This document shows positions 9,986-59,456 of a DNA stretch of 64,000 bases, piece after piece. Numbering within the stretch: position 1 is the stretch's first letter; each line of letters opens with the position of its first letter. Where the stretch lies: sequence record NC_061446.1; one strand, written 5' to 3'. Both the position numbers and the translations under genes were made by a program. Below the pieces are notes generated by a model that was not told the origin of the DNA, ran no database searches, and worked only from the letters and a program-made list of their open reading frames with translations.

Positions 9986-10038
9986 GCAAATAATAGGCTG
10001 AAATAGGTCTATATATGCACATGCGCCTGTGATACACT
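9986..10038 (+). promoter_or_regulatory. Phage promoter copy 1 (upstream box + extended -10)
   Basis: GCAAATAATAGGCTGAAA - 29 bp - (TGa)TACACT. Confidence 0.7.
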
Positions 10039-10091
10039 ATATGCAGACGCTACACGTCGTAGCGCATACAACTCATGCTAAGGGGCATACA

Positions 10092-10790
10092 ATGAAAGCA
10101 GCAAACTTTGATAAAGCATTCAACGCGAAAGACGAAGCAACCTTAAACGCATACGCTGATCGTATTCAGCAAGCGCTTAACGCTCTGGGCCGTTATGACC
10201 TGAAGATCAAAATCATCTTCGGTACCGACCCGTTCAGCGAGTTCCCTGATTTTGTGAATGACCCGAACGGTTTTCGTGTCGTCCAGAACAACGAAGAAGT
10301 TTTCGACATATACACGCCGACCGAGAAACAAATTGAAGGTGATTCGTCTGATGTTTTCGTCTACGCGGCAATCGGCGGCGTAGAAGCCTCCAAGTGGGGA
10401 AAAGAAGTTTCCGATAATGATGTAGAAGAAATTGCCGCTGACCTGAACGAAGAAATCGAACGTGCAGGCCGTGTGTTTTATGAAGAAGACCGCGCAATGC
10501 TGCAAGAGATTGCCGACAAGCTCAATTCTCAAATGCAGCGCACCGACGCTCGCGTGATCGTTACAAACGGTGCCGAAGACAATCTCATTCTTATGGTTGT
10601 CGGTTATGCTGAGGGTGAAGTCAGTGACGAGTACGGTTTCTTCTTAGACCTGCCGTACACTGATGAAGACGCCGCTGATACAAACTACGTCCTGCACTAT
10701 GCAGGTTACCCAGATATGAACGATCACACGTTCACTTCTGAGTCGCTTGATGAAATCTCAAAAGAGATCGAAACACTCGACCTGCTGTAA
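10092..10790 (+). CDS. Acidic hypothetical protein (232 aa)
   Basis: AAGGGG RBS before ATG 10092. Confidence 0.8.
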   Translation: MKAANFDKAFNAKDEATLNAYADRIQQALNALGRYDLKIKIIFGTDPFSEFPDFVNDPNGFRVVQNNEEVFDIYTPTEKQIEGDSSDVFVYAAIGGVEASKWGKEVSDNDVEEIAADLNEEIERAGRVFYEEDRAMLQEIADKLNSQMQRTDARVIVTNGAEDNLILMVVGYAEGEVSDEYGFFLDLPYTDEDAADTNYVLHYAGYPDMNDHTFTSESLDEISKEIETLDLL

Positions 10791-10851
10791 TCGCTAACAC
10801 TGACTGCGGGGTTACGGCCCCGCTTACTTATTTCTATAGAGAGACACGACC

Positions 10852-11472
10852 ATGACTATGCACATCACTACTTTCTTTGTTAAACGTTCTTACGCTTCTC
10901 TGGCTGCTGGTTCATTCACTATCGGCGCCAAGCAAGTGCAAGAGCTGGTGGAATCTGAAATCTTCATCGTGTACGCAAACACGGGACTGGGCAACGCATT
11001 CGCCGTACGCAACATCACTCTGACGCCTGTTGATGAAGCAAACGTGCGTGTTGAGTTCGACCCGCTGACCGACGTTCACGCAATGCCGTCTAGTGTTCTG
11101 CCCAAAGAGAGTCTGACTGAAAGCACACAGCAATATCTCATGGCGCCGGATGACGTGGCCGCTGCCCCTCGCTTCTGCGTATCTAACCACGCATCTGGCA
11201 ACGAGCCGAACATGTTGTGTCTGAATCATGACGTGCGTGAACGCCTGATTCAATATAAGGGCGGCATGATCAGCCTGACAGAGCTGGTACTTGTGCTTCA
11301 CGACCAAGATATTTCAGTGACCGACATTCATCAACATCGTCGCAACAAAGAGAAGTACGTGGCGCAGATCACAGAGCGCACCTCACACGTTATCGAACTG
11401 TCGAAAGACAACGGCGTTAAGCAGCACGATAGCGACTTCCCGTTGCTTGCTCGCCTGAACGTGTATCTCTAA
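10852..11472 (+). CDS. Hypothetical protein (206 aa)
   Basis: Long ORF in operon context. Confidence 0.75.
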   Translation: MTMHITTFFVKRSYASLAAGSFTIGAKQVQELVESEIFIVYANTGLGNAFAVRNITLTPVDEANVRVEFDPLTDVHAMPSSVLPKESLTESTQQYLMAPDDVAAAPRFCVSNHASGNEPNMLCLNHDVRERLIQYKGGMISLTELVLVLHDQDISVTDIHQHRRNKEKYVAQITERTSHVIELSKDNGVKQHDSDFPLLARLNVYL

Positions 11473-11475
11473 TCA

Positions 11476-11528
11476 ACATAGCTTTGGACAAAAGCGCCAT
11501 TGTGCTCTAACGTTCAATGGCGTACTAT
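11476..11528 (+). promoter_or_regulatory. Phage promoter copy 2
   Basis: ACATAGCTTTGGACAAAA - 29 bp - TACTAT; TTGTGC at the 17-bp -35 position. Confidence 0.65.
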
Positions 11529-11575
11529 GTAATCTCTAGCGCAATGACGCGCTCAATCAAGAAAGAGGCAATATC

Positions 11576-11821
11576 ATGTCAGAGAAACAAATCACACTCG
11601 ATCTTATCGCAGACGTAGCATCGCCGACTGAAATCATCTTTGAAGATGGTGAGTCTTCTAACGACTGGCTCAAGCCGTATGACCTGCGCCTGGCTGTTAC
11701 GCAGACTGTCGGCCCGAACGGCTATCCCGAAGTTGCAATCATCGGCCATGAAGATGATCTGCGTCGCTTCTTGGCTGAGAAGCTGCCTGACACTGACGGC
11801 GAACTCGAAGACGTGCGTTAA
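11576..11821 (+). CDS. Hypothetical protein (81 aa)
   Basis: GAGG RBS. Confidence 0.75.
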   Translation: MSEKQITLDLIADVASPTEIIFEDGESSNDWLKPYDLRLAVTQTVGPNGYPEVAIIGHEDDLRRFLAEKLPDTDGELEDVR

Positions 11822-11870
11822 TCTTATGGGGCCTCGTGCCCCATTTCTACTTTCTGCCTGAGATACGACT

Positions 11871-12359
11871 ATGAAAAACCAATATCTGATTCTTCGCATG
11901 AGCCCTGCTGATTTATACGACAATCAATTTCTGATGCGCGGCTTCAATCGCAAACGTATCGAAAACGTCATTGGCGTTATCGTTGTTGTTGATCACTCCG
12001 ACAGCATGTATCACCTGTCGCGTGTTCAAGTTGACCTGTTGCAGTCTGACACACAGCAGAACTGGGCAAGACTGAGTTGGTCTAGCATAGATCGTGAGAG
12101 CATTGACTTAGGCATGCGCAGCCTGCCGCCTGAGCTGGCTATTGCCATTCGTGCTATGCGAAACAATCGTATGTATCACACCGTCGATACAAAAATCCCT
12201 GTGGCGTTTCGTGATCGTCACACTAACTTCGCCTACACGCCGAGCGCCGTACGCAAGATTGCTAACAGAGAAACGAAGTCACTCGACGACTTCACTGTAG
12301 AAGAAATCGTAGCGCACCTGAAACAACGTCTTGGCGTTGAGATTGAAATCAAACTGTAA
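11871..12359 (+). CDS. Hypothetical protein (162 aa)
   Basis: ORF in operon context. Confidence 0.75.
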   Translation: MKNQYLILRMSPADLYDNQFLMRGFNRKRIENVIGVIVVVDHSDSMYHLSRVQVDLLQSDTQQNWARLSWSSIDRESIDLGMRSLPPELAIAIRAMRNNRMYHTVDTKIPVAFRDRHTNFAYTPSAVRKIANRETKSLDDFTVEEIVAHLKQRLGVEIEIKL

Positions 12360-12406
12360 ACACTTAAGGCTCACATTACGTGGGCCGTTTCTATTTGGAG
12401 AATGCT

Positions 12407-12667
12407 ATGATTTATGAACGCGAAGAACTCGCTGCAATGCCGCTTGACGTGCTGTACAATCTCGCTGGCGCTAAAGGTCTGTTAGACGATCTGACCGACG
12501 ATGACGATGCGCCTGATCGTGAAGCGCTGACTGAGATGATTCTCGAATCGCAGTCACTCGAACAGCAGGCAGACGAAGACGACGCAGCCAAGCGTCAGGC
12601 AGAAGATGATCGCGACCCGCGTATCAATCGTCGTGATGGTCAAGACGGCTCGGATGATTACTGCTAA
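12407..12667 (+). CDS. Acidic hypothetical protein (86 aa)
   Basis: GGAG RBS before ATG 12407. Confidence 0.75.
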   Translation: MIYEREELAAMPLDVLYNLAGAKGLLDDLTDDDDAPDREALTEMILESQSLEQQADEDDAAKRQAEDDRDPRINRRDGQDGSDDYC

Positions 12668-12885
12668 TGTCACCTACTGAACTGAACGAATATCTACATC
12701 TGGTGCTGACGCCTGTTGCTATGGCTTGGCGTGAACAGTTTCCCAAAAAGAAACAAGTGATCGCTTCGGTGAAAACGCCGTACTCTTGTCGCATCAAGTT
12801 CGTCGAAGACCAAGAGGTTGAAAAACAGTGGCAGGCATTCTGCCGTACTCACGGTCTCAAGAACGAAGAAACACTCGAAATCTAA
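12667..12885 (+). CDS. Hypothetical protein (72 aa)
   Basis: TAATG stop/start overlap. Confidence 0.7.
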   Translation: MSPTELNEYLHLVLTPVAMAWREQFPKKKQVIASVKTPYSCRIKFVEDQEVEKQWQAFCRTHGLKNEETLEI

Positions 12886-12888
12886 ATC

Positions 12889-12918
12889 AAAGGGCTGCCA
12901 TTGCTGGTGGCCCTTTTT
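12889..12918 (+). terminator. Rho-independent terminator
   Basis: AAAGGGCTGCCA-TTGC-TGGTGGCCCTTTTT. Confidence 0.75.
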
Positions 12919-12963
12919 CATTTCTGTAAATAACTCGTACAACAATCAACGCGAGTCACTACA

Positions 12964-13329
12964 ATGCGCCGCTTCATTCTCGTTCTCAATGTCACTCAGG
13001 CAGAGCTAGACGTCCGCCACTTCATGCAAATCAAACTCAACATCATAAGCACCCTGCGCCGAGCCGCCTGTGTTCTGCTTGTTGTGCGTGAGACGAAACA
13101 GGTCATGTGTGTTTCAGAGCTGACCTTTCAAACTGCGTCAGGCAATCTCAAGCGTGTTGACTTCGACGCACCTCGCGATGTTACTGCGCACGTAATCAAA
13201 TACAACGAACTGATGATGGCTATGGCAAACAACGCCAGAGACCTAAGCGTTCGTCACTTTGGCCGACAGGTCGAGCTAGATACAGCCGACACCAAACGCC
13301 TGTTCACTCAACTGGAGATTATTGCATGA
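12964..13329 (+). CDS. Hypothetical protein (121 aa)
   Basis: ORF coupled (ATGA) to the next gene. Confidence 0.65.
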   Translation: MRRFILVLNVTQAELDVRHFMQIKLNIISTLRRAACVLLVVRETKQVMCVSELTFQTASGNLKRVDFDAPRDVTAHVIKYNELMMAMANNARDLSVRHFGRQVELDTADTKRLFTQLEIIA

Positions 13330-13571
13330 GTCAGTCATTAGGCGCCTCGCTTGGCGCTCGCTTTGCTGTTAGCTCACAAGAGAATATCGAACGCCGTAAG
13401 AAGCGTGACCCGAAAAACAAAACGCTGACCTGCGCTGGCACAACGGCACAATACAACGCAATCGGAGTGCTGGCAAACAAACTTGATGTAAGCCGCTCGC
13501 GTGTTATTGAAATGGCCCTCGAAGAACTGTTGGCTAAACACAATATCAAAGTCGGCGGTGACAATGACTGA
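13326..13571 (+). CDS. Ribbon-helix-helix (CopG/Arc-like) DNA-binding protein (81 aa)
   Basis: KTLTCAGTTAQYNAIGVLANKLDVSRSRVIEMALEELL fits the strand-helix-helix pattern. Confidence 0.65.
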   Translation: MSQSLGASLGARFAVSSQENIERRKKRDPKNKTLTCAGTTAQYNAIGVLANKLDVSRSRVIEMALEELLAKHNIKVGGDND

Positions 13572-13926
13572 CACGCATATCTACTGCCGTCTGTATGGTG
13601 TGCAGCATCGTCTAAAGATTACCGCCTTCAACTTTATGAAGCAGCCGAACATGATCACTGTCGATTCGTCTGATGTTCTCAAGATGATGCCGCTGATTAA
13701 TGTTGGTGCAGCCTATGATACATACACGCCGTACGATGTACTCAAGGCAGGACAGGCTGACTTCAAGATTCGTCTGATCGAAAGAACTGATGCGCATGTC
13801 TGGCGCTATGTGTTCGAAGACTATCGTGGTCAGATGTTTGAAACGTTCTTGATTCGGAGACACTATGAAACGCCTAGGGATTGTAACGGTGTTGTCATTA
13901 AAGGACAAACAACCCAAATCATGTGA
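13564..13926 (+). CDS. Hypothetical protein (120 aa)
   Basis: ATG 13564 overlapping the previous stop. Confidence 0.7.
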   Translation: MTDTHIYCRLYGVQHRLKITAFNFMKQPNMITVDSSDVLKMMPLINVGAAYDTYTPYDVLKAGQADFKIRLIERTDAHVWRYVFEDYRGQMFETFLIRRHYETPRDCNGVVIKGQTTQIM

Positions 13927-14500: not shown

Positions 14501-14805
14501 AATACGAAGCCTGCATCGATCTATTCACACGCGCCGGAAACATGAACCTCCCGATTCTGCCTAAGTGTGAACTACAGGCAACTCTATTCGATCAGTATAC
14601 GAAAAAGCGAATACCAGTTCGCTTTAATGCCACAAACGTAATCAAGGTCAATGGGGCTACGTGCGGCAGCCTGCAAATCTTCGACTGTGTTAATCTGATC
14701 ATCTGGTCATCGTTCGATGTTAGTCGCTTTACGCTGCATATAGAGCGAGTACACAAGGCAGACGTGTCGGAGAGCGCCCAGCAGTCTGTCGAACTCTGCA
14801 AATAA
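14497..14805 (+). CDS. Hypothetical protein (102 aa)
   Basis: ATGA overlap with the previous gene. Confidence 0.65.
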   Translation: MKYEACIDLFTRAGNMNLPILPKCELQATLFDQYTKKRIPVRFNATNVIKVNGATCGSLQIFDCVNLIIWSSFDVSRFTLHIERVHKADVSESAQQSVELCK

Positions 14806-14850
14806 CTGGTCAAAATAGCCGTTCTTTTCAGTACCAGTTTATGTTATACT
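14798..14850 (+). promoter_or_regulatory. Phage promoter copy 3
   Basis: GCAAATAACTGGTCAAAA - 29 bp - (TGt)TATACT. Confidence 0.8.
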
Positions 14851-14896
14851 GAGAGCAAGCGCTATTGCTCATAAAACTCAAGCTGAGGAACTTAAC

Positions 14897-16162: not shown

Positions 16163-16615
16163 ATGGAAATATTCGATCGCTCAAATGTAGTAAGCGCAAT
16201 CATGCGCAACCTGAAAGACGTGCGGAAGATAAAAGACCTACGCACGTTCGACGACAAGGTATACTTTCAGCTTAACGATAAAGGCTACTTTGTTTCTGGC
16301 AAATATCCTGAGTTGAAAGTTATCTGTCAAGGTCAGTATGACTACGAGATGATGGCACAACTCAACTTTGTGTATCAGCGCAAAAAGAAGCCGAGCACGG
16401 ACACGCCTCTACGTTTGGCTCGCATGGCTATGGGCGTATCGCTTGTTGAGGTGGCCAAGCAGCTTGATATAGATGCAGGTAATCTAAGTCGAATTGAACG
16501 GGGCATTCAGATCCCAGCGATGGACTTAGCGGAGCGCATCGCCAAGTATTTCAACAACACAATAACTGCTATTCAAATTTGTCATCCAACTTATAAGGGG
16601 AAAACCAATGCTTGA
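16163..16615 (+). CDS. XRE/Cro-C1 helix-turn-helix protein with an extra N-terminal domain (150 aa)
   Basis: LRLARMAMGVSLVEVAKQLDIDAGNLSRIERGIQIP; GGAGG RBS. Confidence 0.85.
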   Translation: MEIFDRSNVVSAIMRNLKDVRKIKDLRTFDDKVYFQLNDKGYFVSGKYPELKVICQGQYDYEMMAQLNFVYQRKKKPSTDTPLRLARMAMGVSLVEVAKQLDIDAGNLSRIERGIQIPAMDLAERIAKYFNNTITAIQICHPTYKGKTNA

Positions 16616-18347: not shown

Positions 18348-19402
18348 ATACCATTTCTGGCGCAATGATTGACGAAGACGTTCTCGATTGGCTCGACAAT
18401 TTCAATATGCACAAGCAGAAGAATATCTGCGAAGCGATTAACCAGCTGGCTTATGCTAACCGCACCGAGCTGTCTATTCCCAATATGGACTCGGACGAAG
18501 ACATTGCGGCACTGTCTCACTCTGACCTCTTCAAAATCTTAACGCTGGCCAGCCCGAACTCAAAGTACGATCTCACTCTGTCCAACGTTCAACTGCTTGG
18601 TCTGGCAATGAGCGCGATGGGTGTCATTGAATACAGCATGCCTGAACTGAACAGCCCGATTATGATTGCTCGTAAGTTCGCAGACGCGCATCGCAAAAAC
18701 ATTATCGGCTCTACTGGTGACCGCGATAAGATCATCAAGGCGCTTAATGAGTGGCTGTGCGGTTTGCGTGATATTGATTTATCGAACGCAGGTACAGACG
18801 CAGCACCTGAAACTGCGGGTATGTATCTGTGTGTAGACGAACACGAACAGATTCGTTACGGCCGCCTGTACCCTAATAGCAGTGAGGGCTGGACGTTCTG
18901 TGAGTCGTATGAAGATGGCAGTTCGACTCTGTGGTATAGCGATAGCACTGAGCATACTGCCGAAGATGATCTGCCTATCACATTGTTGTCTCAATGGGTG
19001 CTGGTGGCTGAGTGGCATAGCCGTAACGTTAAAGCCGCGCAGAAAGCATTGCCTATGGAAGTGCGTGATACCCATCGTATCTTTATGTTCCTGCGCAGTC
19101 TCAGCCCGCATGTGAAAGCCGAGCTGGTGGCACACTTTGCAGGTGTGCTTGACTACAAAGACCCAACATCGGTAGACTCTATTGGTCGTCTGACTGAACA
19201 CGACTGGCAGATGGCTGCGACAAGTATTGCAGATGACAGCAAGCTGCCTGAAGGTGCCTCAACATGGAAAGAAGCTACCGCCTGGGTGTGCTTCGTAGCG
19301 ACGCTTGAATCCCTGGGTTTCAATTTCCAAACACGTCAGTTTGACCCGCAGTTCGACTATCAGGCAAATGACGACCATCTGGAGGAAGAAGAGGAAGAAT
19401 GA
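18344..19402 (+). CDS. Hypothetical protein (352 aa) with acidic C-terminal tail
   Basis: GGAG RBS, ATGA overlap. Confidence 0.8.
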   Translation: MNTISGAMIDEDVLDWLDNFNMHKQKNICEAINQLAYANRTELSIPNMDSDEDIAALSHSDLFKILTLASPNSKYDLTLSNVQLLGLAMSAMGVIEYSMPELNSPIMIARKFADAHRKNIIGSTGDRDKIIKALNEWLCGLRDIDLSNAGTDAAPETAGMYLCVDEHEQIRYGRLYPNSSEGWTFCESYEDGSSTLWYSDSTEHTAEDDLPITLLSQWVLVAEWHSRNVKAAQKALPMEVRDTHRIFMFLRSLSPHVKAELVAHFAGVLDYKDPTSVDSIGRLTEHDWQMAATSIADDSKLPEGASTWKEATAWVCFVATLESLGFNFQTRQFDPQFDYQANDDHLEEEEEE

Positions 19403-20133: not shown

Positions 20134-20535
20134 ATGGAAAAGACGTACATGAGTCATTGGGGATCGCGCTATGTGCGGTCGTCATCGGGCCGGTGGTTCT
20201 CAGTTCATGGGCGTGAAGGAACAATGGTGACCAATCGGTATGGAACTACGTTCTACCGTAGCGGTTCAGAAGTGTGGCGCGACATAACCAAAGGGTGGGA
20301 GATAGCTCTGGAGCGCGAACTGCATAGTCGAACTCGAAAGGACTTTGAGGCTATTAATGAGAAGTTCCTTCACTGGGGTAAGATAGTCAGAACGATGATT
20401 GAGCAGGGGATTACAGAGAACAACTCACATACTCAAGACTTAGCTGAGATGCTTGAGGCGCTGCGCATCAAATCTTACGGCCCCAAAATCGAGCAACTAC
20501 GCATAATACTGGATGAAACAGCCATTAAAAGCTGA
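20134..20535 (+). CDS. Hypothetical protein (133 aa)
   Basis: ORF in operon context. Confidence 0.65.
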   Translation: MEKTYMSHWGSRYVRSSSGRWFSVHGREGTMVTNRYGTTFYRSGSEVWRDITKGWEIALERELHSRTRKDFEAINEKFLHWGKIVRTMIEQGITENNSHTQDLAEMLEALRIKSYGPKIEQLRIILDETAIKS

Positions 20536-20553
20536 GTCTGATTGTGTTATAAT
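20501..20553 (+). promoter_or_regulatory. Phage promoter copy 4
   Basis: GCATAATACTGGATGAAA - 29 bp - (TGt)TATAAT. Confidence 0.75.
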
Positions 20554-23816: not shown

Positions 23817-24080
23817 ATGGCCGTAGGCTTTGTGAAAGATGATGGCGTAAACGATACCATCGAAACAAACGTAATGAACGAGATTGACCGCGCTCGTTCT
23901 GAACTTCAAGGCGTAGGTTCTGATTACTGCGTCAACCCTGACTGCGGTGAAAAGATTCCTGTGATGCGCAAGCTCGCTATGCCGAATGCGCGTTACTGCA
24001 TTAACTGTCAGGCAAGTCATGATGGTTCTGCCCATGCAGGCTATAATCGTCGCGGCTCCAAAGATTCTCAACTGAGGTAG
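23817..24080 (+). CDS. ybiI: DksA/TraR C4 zinc-finger protein, YbiI-like (87 aa)
   Basis: MAVGFVKDDGVN...IDRARSEL...CVNPDCGEKIP...CINCQ...YNRRGSKDSQLR; C-terminus matches E. coli YbiI as recalled. Confidence 0.9.
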   Translation: MAVGFVKDDGVNDTIETNVMNEIDRARSELQGVGSDYCVNPDCGEKIPVMRKLAMPNARYCINCQASHDGSAHAGYNRRGSKDSQLR

Positions 24081-25132: not shown

Positions 25133-25492
25133 ATGATCAGACAAGTTCCTATCAGAATCTCCAGCAAAGAGCCTAACACTTCAATCGAAGAAGTTGCTCT
25201 TGTTCGCGGCTTCAAAAACTACACCGTTGTTGTTCGCGGTCCGTGGCGTCTTATTCGTTGTACCGATACTGTTGACCTCAAAGTCGTGCTTATCGGTCCT
25301 TACGACGTAATGCCAAACATTACAGGCTACGAGATTCTGACCTCTGCCGGTTTCTCGTCAGTCGATGCTGCGTTAGCTCTTGGTGCAAAACACTATGAAG
25401 TTAAGACGTGGCAGAAGCAACAACGCGCTCGCCTGAAAGCAGCAAAAGCACAACCGCGCCTCGGCCGTACTAACGCACTCGATGATCTTTAA
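25133..25492 (+). CDS. Hypothetical protein (119 aa)
   Basis: GAGGA RBS. Confidence 0.7.
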   Translation: MIRQVPIRISSKEPNTSIEEVALVRGFKNYTVVVRGPWRLIRCTDTVDLKVVLIGPYDVMPNITGYEILTSAGFSSVDAALALGAKHYEVKTWQKQQRARLKAAKAQPRLGRTNALDDL

Positions 25493-27046: not shown

Positions 27047-28027
27047 ATGAGATTCGGATTCGCCTGCAAGCTGATTGACGCAAACGGCAAACAGCCTTAC
27101 CCAAACAAAAGCATTAGCTACGCCCACTTCTCTAAACTTGACCTCGACGCACAACGTCAACGCCTGCGTGAGATAGTCACGGTCAACCTGACCTCGCTTT
27201 ACGATATGATCGCACACGTTGCAATGTTGCGTACTGACATGCGCATGTTCCGTATCACAAGCGAATTACTCCCGCTCTACACTCACCCGAAGGTATCTCA
27301 CCTGTACGATGAACTTGAACTCGCCTCGTACATTGAACACTGGCTGTGGAAGTGCGGTAGCCTTGCTCGTAACTCTGGCGTTCGTCTTTCGTTTCACCCA
27401 GGCCAGTTCACGGTACTTGCATCTGATCGTCCTGATGTTGTTGTCAACTCGATACGCGAACTTGAGTACCACGCCTACTGTGCCTATCACATGGGTTACG
27501 GTCGTCGCTTTCAGGACTTCAAGATCAACATTCACCTCAGCGGTAGACTCGGAGCGAAAGGCTTCCGTGCTGCTCACTCAAAACTTTCTGACCATTGCCG
27601 TAAGATGCTCACAGTGGAGAACGACGAGATCACTTCGAGCGTAGAAGATTGCTTGGAGCTGGCGGACCTATGTCCGATTGTACTCGACATTCACCATCAC
27701 TGGGTAATGACAAACGAATACATTCAACCAGACGATGATCGTGTTCAACGTGTCATTGAGTCTTGGCGCGGCATTACTCCCGTTGCTCACTACTCAGTTT
27801 CAAAGCCAGAGTTCGTGCCGTCTCGTGGTCTGCCTGATCAAAACAAGCTGACTGCTAATCGTATGCAGTTACGCGCCCACGCAGATTACTATCACAACGA
27901 AGACGTGAACGACTGGGCCCTCAGTTTCTCTGAATTTGACCTGATGTGCGAGTCAAAAGCGAAGAATAGAGCGCGAATGAAATTGGCATGTTTTACGCTC
28001 AACTCAGCAAATAACTGGACAAAATAA
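27047..28027 (+). CDS. uvsE: UV DNA damage endonuclease (UvsE/UVDE family)
   Basis: RFGFACK, MFRITSELLP, RLSFHPGQF, KINIHLSG, TVENDE, VLDIHHHW, HYS, AHADY, MCESKAK. Confidence 0.93.
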   Translation: MRFGFACKLIDANGKQPYPNKSISYAHFSKLDLDAQRQRLREIVTVNLTSLYDMIAHVAMLRTDMRMFRITSELLPLYTHPKVSHLYDELELASYIEHWLWKCGSLARNSGVRLSFHPGQFTVLASDRPDVVVNSIRELEYHAYCAYHMGYGRRFQDFKINIHLSGRLGAKGFRAAHSKLSDHCRKMLTVENDEITSSVEDCLELADLCPIVLDIHHHWVMTNEYIQPDDDRVQRVIESWRGITPVAHYSVSKPEFVPSRGLPDQNKLTANRMQLRAHADYYHNEDVNDWALSFSEFDLMCESKAKNRARMKLACFTLNSANNWTK

Positions 28028-28060
28028 GGCTTGTTTTCGAAGGTTGCCCTATGATACACT
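28007..28060 (+). promoter_or_regulatory. Phage promoter copy 5
   Basis: GCAAATAACTGGACAAAA - 30 bp - (TGa)TACACT. Confidence 0.75.
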
Positions 28061-28759: not shown

Positions 28760-29137
28760 ATGATCGTCATTTGTAATAGTTCAAAACAGTTTTGTGCGGA
28801 TCGCCTAGCACACGGGGATGCTTTTGTTTTTGGGAAGACGCGCATGTTACTACGCGCTGACTTCATCGTCCTGACCGACAAGAACAATAGCTTCTATGTA
28901 GTACGCAAATCTGATGTTGTTTGGTCGCCTGAGCTTACAGGTGCTACGCATGTGATTAAAATCCGGGCGTATGCCCAGATTAAGCCGTTCGAACTCAACG
29001 CAGCATGTCCACAATTCAATAGCCGCGTATTCGGAACAATCGCGTTCCGTAATCCGCACTTTGAGCATAGACTCTCGGGTCTTAAATATGTAGAGACAAA
29101 CTTCGGAGGTTTACATGGCACGGTATCATGTGTTTAG
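28760..29137 (+). CDS. Hypothetical protein (125 aa)
   Basis: GGGG RBS before ATG 28760. Confidence 0.55.
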   Translation: MIVICNSSKQFCADRLAHGDAFVFGKTRMLLRADFIVLTDKNNSFYVVRKSDVVWSPELTGATHVIKIRAYAQIKPFELNAACPQFNSRVFGTIAFRNPHFEHRLSGLKYVETNFGGLHGTVSCV

Positions 29138-29366
29138 TGCGACCCATAAGTATTACGGCGAAGCATATGAAGGTACGTGGCTGAAAGAGATCGCTCTCAA
29201 CGGCCAACAAGTTACCATCGCTGAGTTTCCAAACTTCAACGCTGCCAAAGAGTGCGCTGACAAGCTGCATGAGGTTTGCGATATAGGGTGGATCGTCTAC
29301 AACGCTTTTTCCGAAAGAGCGATGTACGACACCCGTACAGAGCAAGGCGAGTCTGTAAATACATAG
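29115..29366 (+). CDS. Hypothetical protein (83 aa)
   Basis: GGAGG RBS. Confidence 0.7.
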   Translation: MARYHVFSATHKYYGEAYEGTWLKEIALNGQQVTIAEFPNFNAAKECADKLHEVCDIGWIVYNAFSERAMYDTRTEQGESVNT

Positions 29367-30256: not shown

Positions 30257-31437
30257 CCGAAAAGAATGAACAACTGGCCGATGCCGTGCGTCGTCTGTTT
30301 AACTCAGGTAGCGTTGAAGTGCGTGATGCGTTACGCGCAGTAGCAAACACCGTGCTCGCTAAAGACGTTGCTCTGCCTTATGAAGGTGACGAGCCGTCTG
30401 TAGAGACAACGTATCGTCTGCTGGAAGGTATTCACTTCTCCGGTGACGGTAAAACGCTTCTGCCGTCAGATGAAATCTACGCGCTGGATAAACTGCTGTC
30501 GAAGAAGTGGCGCGATACGTTCTTCTCCGCCGTGTCGAACATGGCTCTGACTATGCACTGCACCGACCCGCGCACCGCAGACAAAGGCTACTGGCCACCG
30601 AATAACAGTTCCTGCTGTGAGCTGGTTACTCGCGCATTCATCTGGTGTGTAGCGCAATACGGTCTGGAGAATCTTCTCGAAAAAGACACCTCAGTTGTTA
30701 GTCACACGCGCCTGCCTCAGTTCATCATCGCATTGCAGACCGAAGGCAAAGACGAAGGCTATGCGCGTCACTTTAGTCTGTATCATCCTCATAACGATAC
30801 AGGCAATATCGACACAACCAACTATTGGCCGGACGAGTACAAAGCCCAGCAGGAAGAAAAACGCATCGCAAGTCGTCCTGCTGAATACGAGTCCGTTCGC
30901 TATATGGGATTCGACGAACTGGCCGACCTGTGTACTCGTCTGAATCTCATTGGACCAAACTCCAAAGTTCGCTGTGATTGCGATGAAGACGAAGAGGAGA
31001 TCGATTGCGATTGCCAGCCTATGATGGTGGAAGACTTCGATAAGGACCTCGACGAGCTGCAACAAGTCTTCTATGAAAAGTACGGTGACCCGGACGACGA
31101 CATTGAAGAAGATGAAAGCGACTGGATTACTGGTGTGTCGGTTATGGAAGTCACTGTCGATCTTCCTGTTGTGCGTCTGCCTGAGCCTGCGCGAAACAAT
31201 CGCTCGCATCTGCCTCGTCGTGGTCAGAAGAAAGCACTGCCCAAGTCAGTATCACGCAAAGTCACACTGACTCACGATCAGCAAATCTGGCATGAGCTGG
31301 ACAGCAAACAAGAGTTCGGTGATCGCCGCTTCGCTATCACTCTCGTATCTCGCCACACGTGCGGTGTTGATCGAGCTATCGCTACTAACCGCGAAGCGCT
31401 GGCAGTCGCGTACACTCTTATCAACATCGACAAATAA
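30253..31437 (+). CDS. Hypothetical multi-segment protein (394 aa)
   Basis: AAGGA RBS, ATGA overlap. Confidence 0.8.
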   Translation: MTEKNEQLADAVRRLFNSGSVEVRDALRAVANTVLAKDVALPYEGDEPSVETTYRLLEGIHFSGDGKTLLPSDEIYALDKLLSKKWRDTFFSAVSNMALTMHCTDPRTADKGYWPPNNSSCCELVTRAFIWCVAQYGLENLLEKDTSVVSHTRLPQFIIALQTEGKDEGYARHFSLYHPHNDTGNIDTTNYWPDEYKAQQEEKRIASRPAEYESVRYMGFDELADLCTRLNLIGPNSKVRCDCDEDEEEIDCDCQPMMVEDFDKDLDELQQVFYEKYGDPDDDIEEDESDWITGVSVMEVTVDLPVVRLPEPARNNRSHLPRRGQKKALPKSVSRKVTLTHDQQIWHELDSKQEFGDRRFAITLVSRHTCGVDRAIATNREALAVAYTLINIDK

Positions 31438-31482
31438 CTGGTCAAAATAGCGCTTCTTCGCGGGGCGCTTTTCTGCTATAAT
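31430..31482 (+). promoter_or_regulatory. Phage promoter copy 6
   Basis: ACAAATAACTGGTCAAAA - 29 bp - (TGc)TATAAT. Confidence 0.8.
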
Positions 31483-35494: not shown

Positions 35495-36463
35495 ATGAAC
35501 GAACAATTCGAATCAATCCCTGCTGATAAAACCTGTCTGCCATTCTATTCTTCCGTTGCACTGAACACTTACTTCAACGACCGTATCAAGCGTCTCAGTC
35601 TGACTAAGGTGTGGGCATACGTTGAGCGTAACAACTGCCCTGCTTTTGGTGATGATCAGATAATGGAAGCTCTGCACTATCACTCAACGGTGCATATGAA
35701 GCATGTAACTGCTCTCGCTCTTTGGTTGCTTGACTGCGAAGCCGTTCATGATTGGCAGTACAGCAACGGCGCAGTACCGTTAGCTATCGCCTGTATGTTC
35801 CACGACATGAACCATTCGCTTGGTCAGAAAGATGATGCGTACAATGTTCAGCAAGCTATTGCTGCTCTGGAGAAAGCTGCGCACCACGAACTGGCCGACG
35901 CCGTGCTGATTGATAACTGCGACATTGCCTCTGACCTGATTCGTGTTACGCAATTCCCGTACTCGGATGATCGCAAGCCGAAGAACATGATTGAACGTTG
36001 CATTCGTGACGCGGACATTCTTTACGGTATGCAGCCGTTCGTTATCGACTACGTTATGTATGGTCTGCGTGACGAAGTGAATAGCAATCCTGACATGCCC
36101 TATACCTTCACGCAGAAAGAATGGGCTGCCGGCCGTGTCAACTTCCTGCGTAGCGTTGAGATGTTTACGCAGACCGGCAAAGACGCGATGGACTGGTTGC
36201 TTGACAAAGAAAACGATCACAACCATCAGGCGAAGATTGAAAGCTGGATGACCGACAGTATTGATTTTGTCGTCACCAGTGCGCGACACGTCAAAGCGAA
36301 CGATGTTCTGTTTATCGACACGCCCGAAGATACGTTGAAAGCTCGTCGCTTGGTCGAGCGTATCACAGACATGGGTGTGGGCTTCAACGTCTATTTCAAT
36401 GACGGCACTTCGGTTCATCTGCGTAACGGCGAGCACTGCATTCGCGTTGAAAGACGCAAATAA
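35495..36463 (+). CDS. HD-domain phosphohydrolase (PDEase-like HD) (322 aa)
   Basis: YHSTVH...ACMFHDMNHS...TQFPY...IRDADIL. Confidence 0.8.
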   Translation: MNEQFESIPADKTCLPFYSSVALNTYFNDRIKRLSLTKVWAYVERNNCPAFGDDQIMEALHYHSTVHMKHVTALALWLLDCEAVHDWQYSNGAVPLAIACMFHDMNHSLGQKDDAYNVQQAIAALEKAAHHELADAVLIDNCDIASDLIRVTQFPYSDDRKPKNMIERCIRDADILYGMQPFVIDYVMYGLRDEVNSNPDMPYTFTQKEWAAGRVNFLRSVEMFTQTGKDAMDWLLDKENDHNHQAKIESWMTDSIDFVVTSARHVKANDVLFIDTPEDTLKARRLVERITDMGVGFNVYFNDGTSVHLRNGEHCIRVERRK

Positions 36464-36508
36464 TCGGCTGAAATAACCATGCTGTCTAAAGTGCGCCTAT
36501 GCTACAAT
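36456..36508 (+). promoter_or_regulatory. Phage promoter copy 7
   Basis: GCAAATAATCGGCTGAAA - 29 bp - (TGc)TACAAT. Confidence 0.75.
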
Positions 36509-40139: not shown

Positions 40140-40439
40140 ATGAAGCGTGAACACATTCCGATGATCGATGCCGCTATCGTTTTAACGATGGAAGAAAGTC
40201 GTAGCTTTATGGGTCAACGCCCGGACGGCTTTGTCTATCTGCCGAGCAAGGAAGCACTGGAGAAGTTCGAAGCGCATATTCAGAAGCACCGAAGCTACGA
40301 CAGCTACAGCACTATCTTGCACCGCGAGCTTCACGCTATCAGCGCTGAGGGCATTGAGGCGCTTGTTGCTGATATTGAGCGAGACGTAGACAAGCCGTGG
40401 ATGTGGTCAGACGTAGACTACCGCATCAAGCTGTGGTAA
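40140..40439 (+). CDS. Hypothetical protein (99 aa)
   Basis: GAGGTG RBS. Confidence 0.75.
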   Translation: MKREHIPMIDAAIVLTMEESRSFMGQRPDGFVYLPSKEALEKFEAHIQKHRSYDSYSTILHRELHAISAEGIEALVADIERDVDKPWMWSDVDYRIKLW

Positions 40440-40492
40440 GCAAATAACTGGTCAAAATGACGGTAGTATCTGAAACCGCATTGTGATATACT
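40440..40492 (+). promoter_or_regulatory. Phage promoter copy 8
   Basis: GCAAATAACTGGTCAAAA - 29 bp - (TGa)TATACT. Confidence 0.8.
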
Positions 40493-40544
40493 AGAAGCGT
40501 AGCGAATGCTGCGCTTTTTAACTTATGTCTGAGGAGACAATCAA

Positions 40545-42405: not shown

Positions 42406-42614
42406 GCCGACGCCCAACGCAAGATGAAGTAGACGGCCAGATAGCTGCCTCAGAAGAACAACGCTATAGCGAGCGTGAGGCACAATACGCTGATTGGTCA
42501 GATGACGATTTGCGTAATGCACTGCTGGAGAACGGTCTAGTCTTTGATGACGATGACTTAGACGACTACAGCCGACAAGACTGTCTCAGACTGCTTCTGG
42601 GCAGTGGCTACTAA
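42402..42614 (+). CDS. Small acidic protein with HEH-like module (70 aa)
   Basis: ATGA overlap; WSDDDLRNALLENGL...YSRQDCLRLLL. Confidence 0.7.
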   Translation: MSRRPTQDEVDGQIAASEEQRYSEREAQYADWSDDDLRNALLENGLVFDDDDLDDYSRQDCLRLLLGSGY

Positions 42615-42667
42615 GCATAAAACTGGACAAAATGACGGTTGTGTCGAAACAGCGTCCGTGATAGAAT
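42615..42667 (+). promoter_or_regulatory. Phage promoter copy 9
   Basis: GCATAAAACTGGACAAAA - 29 bp - (TGa)TAGAAT; TTGTGT at the -35 position. Confidence 0.8.
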
Positions 42668-42671
42668 ATAG

Positions 42672-42784
42672 ATGTAGGGCGCATATCGTGAGGAGTGCGC
42701 TCTATATGCGAATGACGCGATTCGCAGTACGAGAGAAGTTTTTGACCGTGTGTTTTCGTTTTTCCCGGACACACGGTCCTTTTT
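42672..42784 (+). ncRNA. Candidate ~113-nt three-hairpin small RNA
   Basis: Own promoter; stems 42672-84/42695-707, 42707-13/42720-26 and 42744-53/42769-78 followed by a U-run; next gene has its own promoter. Confidence 0.55.
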
Positions 42785-42861
42785 CAAGTGCCTTCGAAGT
42801 TTGAGGGTGCTTGCGAAAGGGTTCTATACTCTTTGAACACTGCCAGCTATCTGGGAAGTAT

Positions 42862-42915
42862 GCAGAAAACTGGACAAAATCGTGGTTGTTATCTGACGGC
42901 CACCTGAGCTATACT
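42862..42915 (+). promoter_or_regulatory. Phage promoter copy 10
   Basis: GCAGAAAACTGGACAAAA - 30 bp - TATACT. Confidence 0.75.
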
Positions 42916-53836: not shown

Positions 53837-54388
53837 ATGTCTAAGAAAATCATCAGCGGCCTGAACAAAGAAATCAAAGCCCTGGACAAATCTGAAAAAG
53901 CCCTGGTTAAAACTGCTGCCGGTCTGAACAAAGAAGCCGAAGCGATTGCTGCACGTCGCGAAGGCCTGGCTGCTCAGGTTGAAGCGCTGGCGAGCGGTGG
54001 TGAAGCTGCTCCGGCTAAAGCAAAAGGCAAAGCGGCTAAAGCTGAGAAAGCTGCTAAGCCTGCTAAAGCAGAAAAAGCTGGTAAGAAAGCAAAAGCTGAA
54101 AAGCCGGCCAAAGCTGAAAAAGCTGGCAAGAAAGCTAAAGCAGAAAAACCTGCTAAAGCTGAGAAAGCCGCAAAAGCTGAAAAGCCTGCTAAAGCAGACA
54201 AAAAAGCAAAAGCTGAAAAGCCGGCGAAAGCTGACAAGAAAGCTAAAGCTGAAAAAGCTGCTAAGCCTGCCAAAGCTGAAAAAGCTGGCAAAAAAGTAAA
54301 AGCTGAAAAGCCGGCCAAAGCTGATAAAAAAGCTAAAGGCGCGAAAGCGAAGAAGCAGGAAGAAGACTTCGACTTCGAAATGGAATAA
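53837..54388 (+). CDS. Histone H1-like / AlgP-like Lys-Ala-Pro repeat protein (183 aa)
   Basis: AAGGA RBS; about 10 (P)AKA(E/D)K repeats; acidic tail QEEDFDFEME. Confidence 0.85.
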   Translation: MSKKIISGLNKEIKALDKSEKALVKTAAGLNKEAEAIAARREGLAAQVEALASGGEAAPAKAKGKAAKAEKAAKPAKAEKAGKKAKAEKPAKAEKAGKKAKAEKPAKAEKAAKAEKPAKADKKAKAEKPAKADKKAKAEKAAKPAKAEKAGKKVKAEKPAKADKKAKGAKAKKQEEDFDFEME

Positions 54389-54487: not shown

Positions 54488-54982
54488 ATGTCTGCTGAAC
54501 ACCTGCTTAACGACGACCTGCCTGACGATACTCGCCCACTGAAACCCACTCCTGATTCTGCCAAGCCTTCTTACTTCGACCTCGTGTCTCTACGTTTAGA
54601 GGCTGCGGGCCGTCTTGCACGTTCTCTCAAAACTCTCAAAGACGCTAACGTATTCGGTGACGACAACACCGTCGCCAGAGATCTTATGTTGAAAAAGGCT
54701 CTGGAGATCGCAGAGAACTACTGGGCAGAGATTTGCATGGGTCTAGTCCCTGTTAAAGACTCTAGTGGTGGAGATTCACTGCGCGACAATCTGCCTGCGT
54801 GTGTCGAAGCCTTCCGAATCGTAGTGATGGAACATGCTCAACGTGAAGCATTGGAGCGTGAGTGTCGTAACAAGATTGACCACACAGGTGGCTTCAAGAT
54901 TCTCACTCAGCCTCAAGTGCTGCACCTCGAAAGCAAACACGTCTGCAATGGAGATTGCGATCATGGCCCAGAAGCTGTCTGA
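54488..54982 (+). CDS. Hypothetical protein (164 aa)
   Basis: GAGG RBS before ATG 54488. Confidence 0.75.
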   Translation: MSAEHLLNDDLPDDTRPLKPTPDSAKPSYFDLVSLRLEAAGRLARSLKTLKDANVFGDDNTVARDLMLKKALEIAENYWAEICMGLVPVKDSSGGDSLRDNLPACVEAFRIVVMEHAQREALERECRNKIDHTGGFKILTQPQVLHLESKHVCNGDCDHGPEAV

Positions 54983-55307
54983 GCAAATCAACCGCTATTT
55001 CAATCTCATGGAGAAAATCCGTGAGCAACTGTTTCGCGTTATGCCTGTATCTGATCGCTATTTGTGTATTGTCAGTTTCAGCACAAACCATCAGGCGATG
55101 ATGTGCGATCTCGTTAGCAAAGAAAGCCTCATGCCCGCAAAGCTGCTTGATGGACTGACTGGACAAGAGCTTGTGACGTATGGCAGTATCAAGCAATCTA
55201 TCGAAGATTGGGTATCTGGTGGTATGCAAGCTGACTTCCCTCTCAGTCAGAGCGATGACGTATACGCTGAATACAAGAGCTTAACACGCGAACCTGACAT
55301 AAACTAA
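54963..55307 (+). CDS. Hypothetical protein (114 aa)
   Basis: GGAG RBS before ATG 54963. Confidence 0.65.
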   Translation: MAQKLSEQINRYFNLMEKIREQLFRVMPVSDRYLCIVSFSTNHQAMMCDLVSKESLMPAKLLDGLTGQELVTYGSIKQSIEDWVSGGMQADFPLSQSDDVYAEYKSLTREPDIN

Positions 55308-55312
55308 ACTCA

Positions 55313-55365
55313 GCAAATAGCTGGACGAAATGCGGGTATATAAGAATAATCTTATGTGATATAAT
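55313..55365 (+). promoter_or_regulatory. Phage promoter copy 11 (topoisomerase operon)
   Basis: GCAAATAGCTGGACGAAA - 29 bp - (TGa)TATAAT. Confidence 0.8.
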
Positions 55366-55437
55366 AGCGTCAGACAAGTAGTGTCTGAACTTGCTAATAT
55401 CGAGTAGTCTACGCTACTCACTCAGGAGAATACCAAA

Positions 55438-57468: not shown

Positions 57469-57469
57469 G

Positions 57470-57727
57470 ATGGACTTCAATATAGCTAATCTCCCTGATG
57501 GAACTCAGATTCGTTTTCTGGACATGCCGTCTATTCAACATGCGCCGATGACTGCCGAGCAGCAGGCTGAATATGACAGACTGATTCCGAAGCTGCGTGA
57601 AATGTCAAAGAACTGTGTTGTATCTGCGCACACTGTAGTTGACGGCCAGCCGCGTGAGCGTGTGCTGGTGCAGATGAAGCGAACTATTCTCGCTAAGATT
57701 AACGCGATTGCCAAAGGGGAACAGTAA
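57470..57727 (+). CDS. Hypothetical protein between topoisomerase subunits (85 aa)
   Basis: GGAGG RBS before ATG 57470; TAATG coupling to the A subunit. Confidence 0.75.
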   Translation: MDFNIANLPDGTQIRFLDMPSIQHAPMTAEQQAEYDRLIPKLREMSKNCVVSAHTVVDGQPRERVLVQMKRTILAKINAIAKGEQ

Positions 57728-59382
57728 TGGCAGTTAAGCCGAAGAAAGTTAAAGTCGAAAAGAAATCGACTGCGGTAGCGAAGCCTACAAAGGTTAAGTT
57801 GAAGTCGAAGTCGAAAGCTGTTGCTGCCGATGACCTGCCGAAAAAGAAAAAGAAGAAAGGCGAAGTAGTTGAGACAAGCACAGGTACTTCACTGTACCCG
57901 ATGCTGGGTCAAGACGAGTCTCTCATTCGTGACGAGAACCTCGCTGACTATACACGACGCGCTCTCTTCCAGTACGGCTCATACGTTGTTGAAGACCGTG
58001 CTATCGCTGACTATCGTGACGGTCTCAAGCCTGTGCATCGTGCGTTACTCTGGTCGCTGTCTGACTTGGGCTTACGTCCGGGCGGTGCGTTCAAGAAAGC
58101 TGCGCGTACCGTAGGTGATGCGTTAGGTAAGTATCACCCCCACGGCGATGCTGCCTGTTACGGCGCGATGGTAACGATTGCAAACACAGTACCGCCTGCG
58201 GTAGCCGGTCAAGGTAACTGGGGCGACCCAGTAGCGCCTGCCGCTGCGATGCGTTATACCGAAGCGAAAATGAGTAAGTTCGCGGGTAGCTTCTTGCTGG
58301 ACCCGGACTATCTCGAAGTAACGCCGATGGTGGATAACTTCTCGAACGATATGAAGCTGCCACTGTATCTGCCTGCGCTGCTGCCGTACATGCTGTTCAA
58401 CGGTAGTGTGCCTGCGCCAGCATATGGCGTTAAGTGCGGTAACCCATCGTTCAGCTTCACGTCCGTTGCGAAAGTCGTGTGTGATATGCTTAACGGCAAA
58501 GAGTACACGGCTAAGAAGCTCGCTGAGACACTCAAAGTCAATCATGAGTATGGCTGTCTCGATGTAAGCTCTGATGAAGACTTCCTCGCGCTGATGACGA
58601 CAGGCAAGGGTAAAGTCACATACGAACCGCAGATGAAGGTCGACGAGAAGACGAAGACCATCACAATTCAAACGTATGTGCCTGGCGGTATGTCGAACAA
58701 CGCAGCGATAACCAAGAAGCTGGAGAAGATTGCAGAGTGGTCTGGTGTTGTGTCTGCATCGAACGCCAGTTCGAAGAAGAACAAAGATGCAGGCCCATGG
58801 GGTGCAGCGTTTGCTATCAAGTGTCGTGGTAGCGAAGACCAGTTGTATGAGATTGCCTCGAAGGTGCAACGTGAAGTAACCTCGTCAATCAACTACGCGC
58901 TGGGTGTGACAGTTCGCCGTGCTGACGCATCGAACAAGTTTATGTACCTGTCGTATGTGAACTATTTCAAAGCGTGGGTTGCGTATCGCGTCAAGCTGGA
59001 AGTGGCGATGCTCAAGAACAAGATGGCCAAAGCAGAGAAAGCCTTACATCTGCAACAGGTCTACTTGTGGGCAGTGGACAACATGGACAAGTTGCTCAAA
59101 GCTCTGCCTAAAGCGCTGGTAGCGAAAGACCCTGACGAGACGCTTGCGAAGCTGTGTAAGATTCCTCAGGAAGATGCGAAAATCATCCTCGATCGTCAGG
59201 TGCGTAAGCTGGCAAAACTGGAACGTGCTGGGCTGGTGGCCAAGATTAAAGAAATCAAGGCCGAGATTGCCGAGTATAAAGCCGGTCTGAAAGAGCCGGG
59301 TAAATATGCAGCAAACGGTACAGCGGCTAAAGTTAAAGCGTATCTCAAGTCACCCGACGACAAGATGCCTGTAAGTCTCTGA
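57727..59382 (+). CDS. gyrA: Type IIA topoisomerase A subunit (GyrA/ParC-like, 551 aa, no C-terminal beta-pinwheel)
   Basis: RAIADYRDGLKPVHR, KKAAR.VG..LGKYHPHGD, GQGNWG, AAMRYTE (catalytic Tyr). Confidence 0.93.
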   Translation: MAVKPKKVKVEKKSTAVAKPTKVKLKSKSKAVAADDLPKKKKKKGEVVETSTGTSLYPMLGQDESLIRDENLADYTRRALFQYGSYVVEDRAIADYRDGLKPVHRALLWSLSDLGLRPGGAFKKAARTVGDALGKYHPHGDAACYGAMVTIANTVPPAVAGQGNWGDPVAPAAAMRYTEAKMSKFAGSFLLDPDYLEVTPMVDNFSNDMKLPLYLPALLPYMLFNGSVPAPAYGVKCGNPSFSFTSVAKVVCDMLNGKEYTAKKLAETLKVNHEYGCLDVSSDEDFLALMTTGKGKVTYEPQMKVDEKTKTITIQTYVPGGMSNNAAITKKLEKIAEWSGVVSASNASSKKNKDAGPWGAAFAIKCRGSEDQLYEIASKVQREVTSSINYALGVTVRRADASNKFMYLSYVNYFKAWVAYRVKLEVAMLKNKMAKAEKALHLQQVYLWAVDNMDKLLKALPKALVAKDPDETLAKLCKIPQEDAKIILDRQVRKLAKLERAGLVAKIKEIKAEIAEYKAGLKEPGKYAANGTAAKVKAYLKSPDDKMPVSL

Positions 59383-59403
59383 TTAATCTGTAAATACAAC
59401 TCA

Positions 59404-59456
59404 GCATATTCTTGGATGAAACGCGGTTGTATCAGATTAATCTTATATGATATAAT
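59404..59456 (+). promoter_or_regulatory. Phage promoter copy 12
   Basis: GCATATTCTTGGATGAAA - 29 bp - (TGa)TATAAT. Confidence 0.75.

Follow-up and report, generated by a model that had tools for sequence, protein, structure and literature searches.

A family of twelve probable early promoters with a conserved upstream box in the jumbo Erwinia phage pEa_SNUABM_30

Introduction

What reads an 18-bp box that recurs twelve times, each time 29 or 30 nucleotides upstream of a -10 element, towards the end of a jumbo phage genome? The stretch that raises this question (hereafter the window, 64,000 nucleotides) is a 100% match to Erwinia phage pEa_SNUABM_30 (NC_061446.1, 259,771 bp) and comprises record positions 195,772-259,771, the last 64 kb. 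This phage is a jumbo myovirus of Erwinia amylovora in the genus Alexandravirus, and the annotated genes of the window are all on the plus strand and mostly labelled 'hypothetical'. A first inspection of the letters alone (the original prediction) had described the box and its -10 as a promoter family, and had proposed that the box is a variant UP element or the site of a phage activator or sigma-like factor that defines an early or middle regulon. Here we find that the family is real and, judged by its conservation, functional; from its sequence it is best read as this clade's class of early promoters for the host polymerase, with an unusual, lineage-specific upstream element.

The clade, which consists of phages of about 260 kb that infect Erwinia, Dickeya and Pseudomonas, has no published transcription map and the function of most of its genes is not known, while some members are included in fire-blight phage cocktails. 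In the searchable literature we found neither transcriptome data for this phage group nor, in full-text searches by motif strings and phage names, any description of these promoters. The pEa_SNUABM_30 genome has plus-strand blocks at 181-260 kb and 0-43 kb and a minus-strand block at 43-181 kb that carries the structural and many of the replication genes. No multisubunit RNA polymerase is found among its 330 annotated genes, going by the deposited annotation and PMC7412058 and with no search of our own, and the paper on Pseudomonas phage PaBG gives the same picture for the wider group (PMC7412058). The sole annotation that bears on transcription is a sigma factor, gp235, encoded just upstream of the window.

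Results

Twelve intergenic copies in one block of the genome

A scan with the consensus GCAWATAAYTGGWCRAAA, allowing at most three mismatches, returned 11 sites, all on the plus strand, against 0.55 expected from shuffled sequence. The twelfth box, at 11476, is more diverged and scores 16.3 bits with a matrix made from the twelve boxes of the original prediction. Across the 259,771-bp genome, searched on both strands with this matrix, the twelve scored 16.3-27.9 bits; they match their own matrix by construction, so the scan shows only that the genome holds no further copies. The next best match reached 14.0 bits, inside a gene and without a -10, and the other matches at or below that score are likewise in coding sequence and lack a -10. 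The predicted family, with the same box starts, is thus confirmed with nothing to add to it in this genome, and relatives carry it too.

All 12 promoters are intergenic and on the plus strand, within a single 50-kb block (genome positions 205,757-255,175). In ten of them the -10 sits 32-72 nt before a start codon, p59404 and p42615 being the exceptions. In window coordinates, with each promoter named after the start of its box and N29 or N30 denoting the distance from box to -10, they are as follows.

p9986, 9980..10038, plus strand: AAsTmw and box (9986-10003), N29, TG and TACACT; upstream of gp246 (ATG 10092)
p11476, 11470..11528, plus strand: diverged box ACATAGCTTTGGACAAAA, N29, TACTAT without TG; upstream of gp248 (ATG 11576); orthologue group 2
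p14798, 14792..14850, plus strand: consensus box, N29, TG and TATACT; upstream of gp257 (ATG 14897)
p20501, 20495..20553, plus strand: box, -35 TTAAAA, N29, TG and TATAAT; upstream of gp269 (ATG 20603)
p28007, 28001..28060, plus strand: consensus box, N30 (18-bp spacer between -35 and -10), TG and TACACT; upstream of gp283 (ATG 28117)
p31430, 31424..31482, plus strand: box, N29, TG and TATAAT; upstream of gp290 (ATG 31550)
p36456, 36450..36508, plus strand: box GCAAATAATCGGCTGAAA, N29, TG and TACAAT; upstream of gp299 (ATG 36541)
p40440, 40434..40492, plus strand: consensus box, N29, TG and TATACT; upstream of gp306 (ATG 40545)
p42615, 42609..42667, plus strand: box, N29, TG and TAGAAT; no open reading frame (ORF) downstream; followed by a structured stretch of about 115 nt (about 42674-42791) with a terminator-like hairpin at its end
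p42862, 42856..42915, plus strand: box, N30, TATACT without TG; upstream of gp311 (ATG 42975)
p55313, 55307..55365, plus strand: box, N29, TG and TATAAT; upstream of gp323, topoisomerase II large subunit (ATG 55438)
p59404, 59398..59456, plus strand: box GCATATTCTTGGATGAAA, N29, TG and TATAAT; 285-nt leader before gp326 (ATG 59742)

Anatomy of the promoter

To describe the promoter we used 76 curated copies from seven phages of three genera, namely pEa_SNUABM_30, AD1, Alexandra, SNUABM_32, SNUABM_22, Yoloswag and Y3, the homologous 50 kb of each of the six relatives being compared. The logo reads AAsTmw followed by GCAwATAAyTGGnYRAAAT. Within the box C2, A3, G11, G12 and A17 are invariant in 76/76 copies, G1 is present in 66 and C or T stands at position 14 in 74. 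The AAsTmw element directly 5' of the box, which the original prediction had missed, extends the conserved region to about 25 bp in all. Box and extension may be viewed loosely as a direct repeat of 12-13 bp (AACTCTGCAAAT / AACTGGTCAAAAT), as read from the logo without statistics.

On the 3' side, the box is followed by six weakly conserved G/C-rich bases, then T (75/76), T or A, and G (41/76). This partial -35 begins 6 bp from the end of the box and lies 17 bp from the -10, or 18 bp in the N30 copies. The observation that the -35 always starts with T holds, therefore, for all 12 copies here (the base 7 nt after the box) as well as for nearly the whole family. The distance from box to -10 is 29 nt in ten window copies and 30 nt in two (28007 and 42862), exactly as predicted, and across the family it is 29 nt in about 55 copies, 30 nt in 15 and 28 nt in about five. 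The extra base of the N30 copies belongs to the -35/-10 spacer, so it is the -35, not the -10, to which the box is locked, a second point that had gone unnoticed.

The third such point concerns the -10 region, for which the logo is T-17 R T-15 G-14 n T A t A a T. A TG precedes the -10 in 10 of the 12 window copies (all except 11476 and 42862), in agreement with the earlier count, and family-wide T-15 occurs in 69/76 copies, G-14 in 68/76 and T-17 in 59/76, T-17 giving a TRTG-type extended -10. The TAnnnT hexamer is found in 12/12 window copies and in 76/76 of the family, for which it was a selection criterion. A generic -35/-10 scan, by comparison, detects only 2 of the 10 box copies in its range. 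The two counts made over 40 kb of the region, 18 generic promoters where shuffled sequence gives 23.8 and 21 where it gives 19.5, show no enrichment of that kind of promoter.

If transcription starts about 7 nt after the -10, an assumption on which the numbering rests, the box spans -59 to -42. Its A-tracts (AAA at -57 to -55 within a tract from -57 to -52, and RAAA at -45 to -42) then coincide with the distal and proximal UP subsites, and the 76-copy logo bears out both this alignment and the foreignness of the central GG to the UP consensus. The position would then be that of an UP element (about -59 to -38, directly upstream of the -35); the sequence is not A/T-only, and the A-tracts alone match.

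The box is conserved and the spacer is not

The family occupies the same intergenic sites in the same order in Alexandravirus genomes and in Y3, and Yoloswag has about ten copies. When orthologous promoters from six phages are compared in pairs, the box averages an identity of 0.82, followed by AAsTmw (0.77), the six bases after the box (0.70) and the -35 hexamer (0.69), while the spacer reaches 0.50 and the upstream flank 0.45. Purifying selection thus acts on the box but not on the spacer. Paralogous copies within one genome keep the length of the spacer, and their spacer sequences are unrelated.

Databases were scanned with a composite pattern of box core, -35 T and TGnTAnnnT at N29. In IMG/VR it matched almost only jumbo contigs of this clade (210-268 kb), plus about 15 singletons at roughly the level of chance. 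In bacterial genomes there were, among the matches listed, only scattered singletons in unrelated AT-rich taxa, with no sign of enterobacterial use.

Related lineages carry different boxes

Dickeya phage JA29 (Salmondvirus) has about ten copies of the promoter, and all of them have TGTCC where the other phages have TGGWC. The copies otherwise keep the same AACTCY extension, the -35 T and the N29 spacing. JA29 and AD1, the latter with the GG type of box, are both recorded as isolated on Dickeya solani MK10. Pseudomonas phage PaBG goes further: a different conserved upstream box, CTAWAAACATAACCNCTA, lies at about the same distance from a TRTGnTAtAaT element (at 18692-18744, 25392-25444 and 29095-29147 of the compared segment). 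The upstream box may, on the PaBG comparison, be a clade-wide design with a lineage-specific sequence.

Core promoter and stage

By its sequence the core is that of a host sigma-70-type extended -10 promoter (TRTGnTAtAaT and a partial -35). Two other motif classes occur in the genome, each with the strand bias of the genes, and neither has a sigma-70 -10 or -35. The motif aatCTGTAAAT/Ca, the CTGTAAAT class, is present 29 times on the plus strand and 21 times on the minus strand, oriented with the genes; many copies stand 25-60 nt ahead of the start codon of a gene for replication or nucleotide metabolism, among them gp235 and the SSB gene, both just upstream of the window. It is a candidate class of middle promoters. 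The motif cgCTAATTTnA is found 25 times on the minus strand and six times on the plus strand, upstream of structural genes and often directly after a terminator hairpin, mostly at 43-181 kb on the minus strand, and is a candidate class of late promoters.

CTGTAAAT motif in the window: 3259, 12354, 12924, 29353, 51196, 52061, 52711, 52767 and 59388
cgCTAATTTnA in the window: 5190 and 5874, preceding gp243 (ATG 5913)

These two motifs precede the replication and the structural genes, which leaves the box family as the probable early class, read by the host polymerase, in a programme with three classes, as far as motif classes can tell. The proposal of a regulon is well supported by position, orientation, the sigma-70 core, conservation at orthologous sites and selection on the box. 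As to its stage, which had been left between early and middle, 'early' is the better fit and 'middle' the poorer, given the separate CTGTAAAT motif before replication genes.

A CTGTAAAT motif also lies 16 nt upstream of the p59404 box, and for this reason gp326 may have two promoters of different classes. The leader that follows p59404 (59457-59741, 285 nt) is unusually long and without a convincing ORF.

Search for a protein that reads the box

About 40 proteins of the phage and its relatives were searched with Pfam and PHROGs. Some 34 are encoded in the window. Of the 11 genes that directly follow a box promoter, ten are in this set, none of them with an informative Pfam domain, and the eleventh, gp323, is annotated as topoisomerase II large subunit. 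The sole leads were the following.

gp260 (ORF 16163), 16163-16615: XRE helix-turn-helix, not conserved
gp253 (ORF 13326), 13326-13571: weak ribbon-helix-helix, E 5e-4, below the Pfam cut-off
gp274, 23817-24080: DksA/TraR zinc finger, conserved in all genera including JA29

Two of these, together with ORF 62410, had been put forward as candidates, and all three are poor. We dropped gp260, which was clearly detected only in pEa_SNUABM_30 and AD1, and gp253, which was not detected in the examined parts of Yoloswag or JA29, both of which bear the box. ORF 62410 (gp329) is conserved, yet neither Pfam nor PDB gave a match and PHROGs gave nothing informative; it shows no DNA-binding signature. Proteins of the DksA/TraR family, such as gp274, bind polymerase and not DNA. 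The sigma factor gp235 had no Pfam or PDB match and hit only phrog_17569, 'sigma factor'. Pfam found no DNA-binding domain in ten further proteins, most of which belong to the core early region and are common to Yoloswag, Y3 and JA29, and the proteins syntenic with the PaBG 'putative DNA-binding protein' beside topoisomerase II gave no matches. Apart from these, gp320 (53837-54388), conserved in Yoloswag and JA29, consists largely of Lys/Ala repeats of the AKKAEKPAKA type, like the tails of histone H1 or AlgP, and is a possible nucleoid-associated DNA-binding protein.

Hairpins, leaders and a candidate small RNA

A short, G+C-rich stem-loop begins 0-10 nt past the -10 in most of the promoters, which places it at the likely 5' terminus of the transcript or close to it (for example at window positions 10042-10063, 40493-40512 and 55367-55386). 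Within the searched span of 36 nt after the -10, a stem of at least 5 bp starting within 15 nt, mostly within 10, was present in 61/76 copies, against 51% of random 36-mers. The hairpin is kept between orthologues while the sequences differ, and it may stabilise the 5' end of the mRNA. In p31430 (31449-31469) and p11476 (about 11494-11522) a G+C-rich hairpin, terminator-like in p31430, lies inside the 29-nt spacer between box and -10; here too the structure, but not its sequence, is kept between orthologues, suggesting that terminator and promoter are combined in one element. A further terminator-like hairpin (9917-9935) stands just 5' of p9986.

The roughly 120 nt that follow p42615 (42668-42795) fold into three hairpins (-50.1 kcal/mol, z -4.7), and the third is a terminator-like stem with a U-run behind it. 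Unannotated DNA in 27 further records of related phages conserves the terminator part at 84-94%, and relatives have genes after this stretch (gp309-311 of AD1) that are absent from pEa_SNUABM_30. We propose it as a candidate small non-coding RNA or leader/attenuator. Rfam and tRNA scans of the window found nothing.

Discussion

Taken together, it is probable that the box family represents early promoters of pEa_SNUABM_30 that are served by the host polymerase and that carry a functional upstream docking site. We propose the following model. Host sigma-70 RNA polymerase would read these promoters through the TRTG-type extended -10 and a partial -35 (TTG) at 17-18 bp, and would initiate about 7 nt past the -10, in most cases so that a short stem-loop comes first in the transcript. 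The transcripts would enter 12 units, mostly of small genes of unknown function but also of the genes for topoisomerase II. The docking site would be the stretch of about 25 bp, AAsTmw-GCAwATAAyTGGnYRAAAT, that ends exactly 6 bp upstream of the -35, and it would act on the polymerase always from the same side of the helix.

As for what docks there, we tentatively favour a phage-encoded, sequence-specific protein, either brought in with the DNA or synthesised early, to serve as a feedback activator or as a shut-off factor. The difference between the JA29 and AD1 boxes on the same host strain favours such a reader over the host's alpha subunit C-terminal domain (alpha-CTD): a base that is invariant in 76 copies and yet different in all copies of JA29, on the same host, is what would be expected of a reader that co-evolves with its site, although we regard this as suggestive. 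In a specific form, which we consider possible, the box is the operator of an unrecognised phage protein that contacts RNA polymerase and co-evolves with the site across the 'hairy' jumbo myoviruses, with a GG type in Alexandravirus, Yoloswagvirus and Sasquatchvirus, a GT type in Salmondvirus and another box in Baikalvirus. Of the readings originally offered, a phage activator or regulator is therefore the one that the evidence favours, unproven as it is. A sigma-like factor that reads the box is geometrically implausible, because a -35 and a -10 at normal spacing follow downstream of the box, and a plain UP-element variant is weakened by five G/C positions that are invariant or nearly so and by the JA29 variant.

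Several points weigh against this interpretation. The protein search yielded no conserved DNA-binding candidate for the box, and the virion would have to carry any reader that is required at time zero. The JA29 argument concerns about ten copies in one lineage, and a tolerant host reader combined with founder effects could explain it. The A-tracts at -57 to -52 and -45 to -42 fall on UP subsites, so that direct contact by alpha-CTD is plausible, and both 'early' and the numbering of -59 to -42 are inferred.

The simplest alternative to a phage protein is that the box is a sequence-specialised UP element, in which two host alpha-CTDs bind the A-tracts CAAAT and YRAAAT, about 12 bp apart, with no other protein involved. 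We think this somewhat unlikely, and say the same of its corollary that alpha-CTD contact gives these extended -10 promoters great strength as soon as infection begins. The location of the box at an inferred -59 to -42, its A-tracts on both subsites and its lock to the -35 all suit alpha-CTD, which would work at time zero without any phage protein, and AD1, with its Dickeya host, shares its box with the Erwinia phages; alpha-CTD is highly conserved across Erwinia and Dickeya hosts. However, alpha-CTD reads a narrow A/T minor groove, and the UP consensus, reportedly given by Estrem and colleagues in 1998/1999 as nnAAAWWTWTTTTnnnAAAnnn, is A/T only, whereas G1, C2, G11, G12 and C/T14 show little or no variation among the 76 copies; JA29 replaces the invariant GG with GT in every copy on AD1's host strain, and the PaBG box is unrelated. 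That the phage exploits the site of a conserved transcription factor or nucleoid protein of the Enterobacterales for its early genes strikes us as very unlikely. The identical box in Erwinia and Dickeya phages would fit, as would its asymmetry and its conserved blocks about one helical turn apart, which suit a monomeric or tandem-binding factor. Yet the composite pattern is confined to this clade in IMG/VR and the bacterial matches listed are scattered singletons, JA29 and AD1 differ on one host strain, and comparison of consensus sequences by eye gave no match to Fis, IHF, CRP, MarA/SoxS/Rob (marbox), CpxR, PhoB or sigma-54 (-24/-12), none of which, nor a reverse MotA box, fits the register. 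A reader that is none of these, neither phage protein nor alpha-CTD nor host transcription factor, seems distinctly unlikely. We also considered recognition of the AmrZ ribbon-helix-helix type and rejected it; the amrZ1 site CTGGCAAAACGCC (PMC3325190) resembles CTGGTCAAAAT-AGCC, but the spacing of the half-sites differs.

Two further explanations dispense with a docking site. The box could be a -10-like element of a phage-modified polymerase, related to the CTGTAAAT class, so that each locus has two tandem promoters. CTGGTCAAAAT is indeed loosely like the CTGTAAAT motif, and at N29 after two JA29 boxes (25248 and 28690 of the compared segment) the putative middle motif, as CTGTAAA(A/C)T, takes the place of a TAnnnT -10 with a spaced TG. 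But CTGGTCAAAAT and CTGTAAAT differ in length, independent promoters would not need a strict 6-bp distance from box to -35, and CTGTAAAT sites exist elsewhere without a box, all of which makes this highly improbable. We give almost no credence to the view that the repeats are relics of a duplicated promoter cassette, with a box that by itself does nothing. Cassettes do seem to be exchanged, in that the Y3 promoter of group 10 (orthologue of p42862) bears the downstream hairpin typical of group 2 (p11476; 34958 against 2760 in the compared segment), and the genes between p42615 and p42862 vary among phages. Nevertheless, paralogous spacers are unrelated in sequence yet constant in length, orthologous boxes are 82% identical against 45-50% for the flanks, and the invariant positions hold in three genera, so that the box is under a constraint of its own and is not a relic of duplication.

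The family provides a map of 12 probable early transcription units, which the CTGTAAAT and CTAATTT motifs extend to a three-stage programme that can be tested. As a cis-element the box is unusually sharp, in that some of its bases never vary, its register is fixed and one lineage has a variant of its own, and this makes the choice between alpha-CTD and a private phage factor directly testable. If a phage factor is at work, it would be a new route by which a jumbo phage without its own polymerase takes over the host enzyme, and if the box is a co-evolving operator, the phage would exert private control over the host sigma-70 polymerase. The box promoters may perhaps also be useful as strong, compact parts for enterobacterial expression.

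The box family can be set beside several known systems. It is not a T4 MotA-dependent middle promoter, given that there is no MotA box (TGCTT) at -30, that the box lies at -59 to -42 and that a TTG-type -35 is kept. Early promoters of phiKZ-like and AR9-like jumbo phages consist of an AT-rich motif of about 10 nt centred at -10, which is read by a phage multisubunit (virion) polymerase (PMC7598289). Those promoters likewise are a bioinformatically obvious conserved motif before jumbo-phage early operons, but the present clade has no annotated multisubunit polymerase and its promoters resemble the host sigma-70 type. The PeSL cassettes of T4-like phages are composite terminator/promoter motifs with a near-consensus -35 and -10 and no upstream box (PMC2839356, PMC4122927). 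Here too there are repeated early sigma-70 promoters with stem-loops in a block of small variable genes, with gene content that differs beside the cassettes; however, our phage is not T4-like, an upstream box is present, and the hairpin mostly follows the -10 and lies inside the promoter in only two copies.

Also among the closest systems are the sigma-70 promoters that combine an extended -10 (TRTGn) with an UP element, such as rrnB P1 and the T4 early promoters (A-rich at -42/-52). They share with the box family TGn, TAnnnT, T-17 and a partial -35 at 17-18 bp, as well as a conserved region from about -60 to -40 with A-tracts on the UP subsites, and T4 early promoters have a phage-specific and unusually long early consensus as well. 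What sets the box family apart is that G and C are invariant (the 5' GC and the central GG), that a specific sequence and not A/T richness is kept, and that the box differs between lineages isolated on the same host strain. The box also resembles the sites of Mu Mor/C, P2/P4 Ogr/Delta (about -55), phi29 p4 and class I activators, each a specific site of about 18-25 bp in fixed helical phase upstream of a weak -35. The Mu, P2/P4 and phi29 sites belong to middle or late promoters with poor core elements and have dyad symmetry, whereas, in contrast to the Mor/C and Ogr types, the promoters described here have a near-consensus -10 with TG and an asymmetric site (a loose repeat AAyTnnnCAAAT), and no homologue of a Mor/C- or Ogr-type activator was found among the scanned proteins. 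Even so, an upstream site held in fixed phase suggests contact with alpha-CTD of the kind made at activator-dependent promoters.

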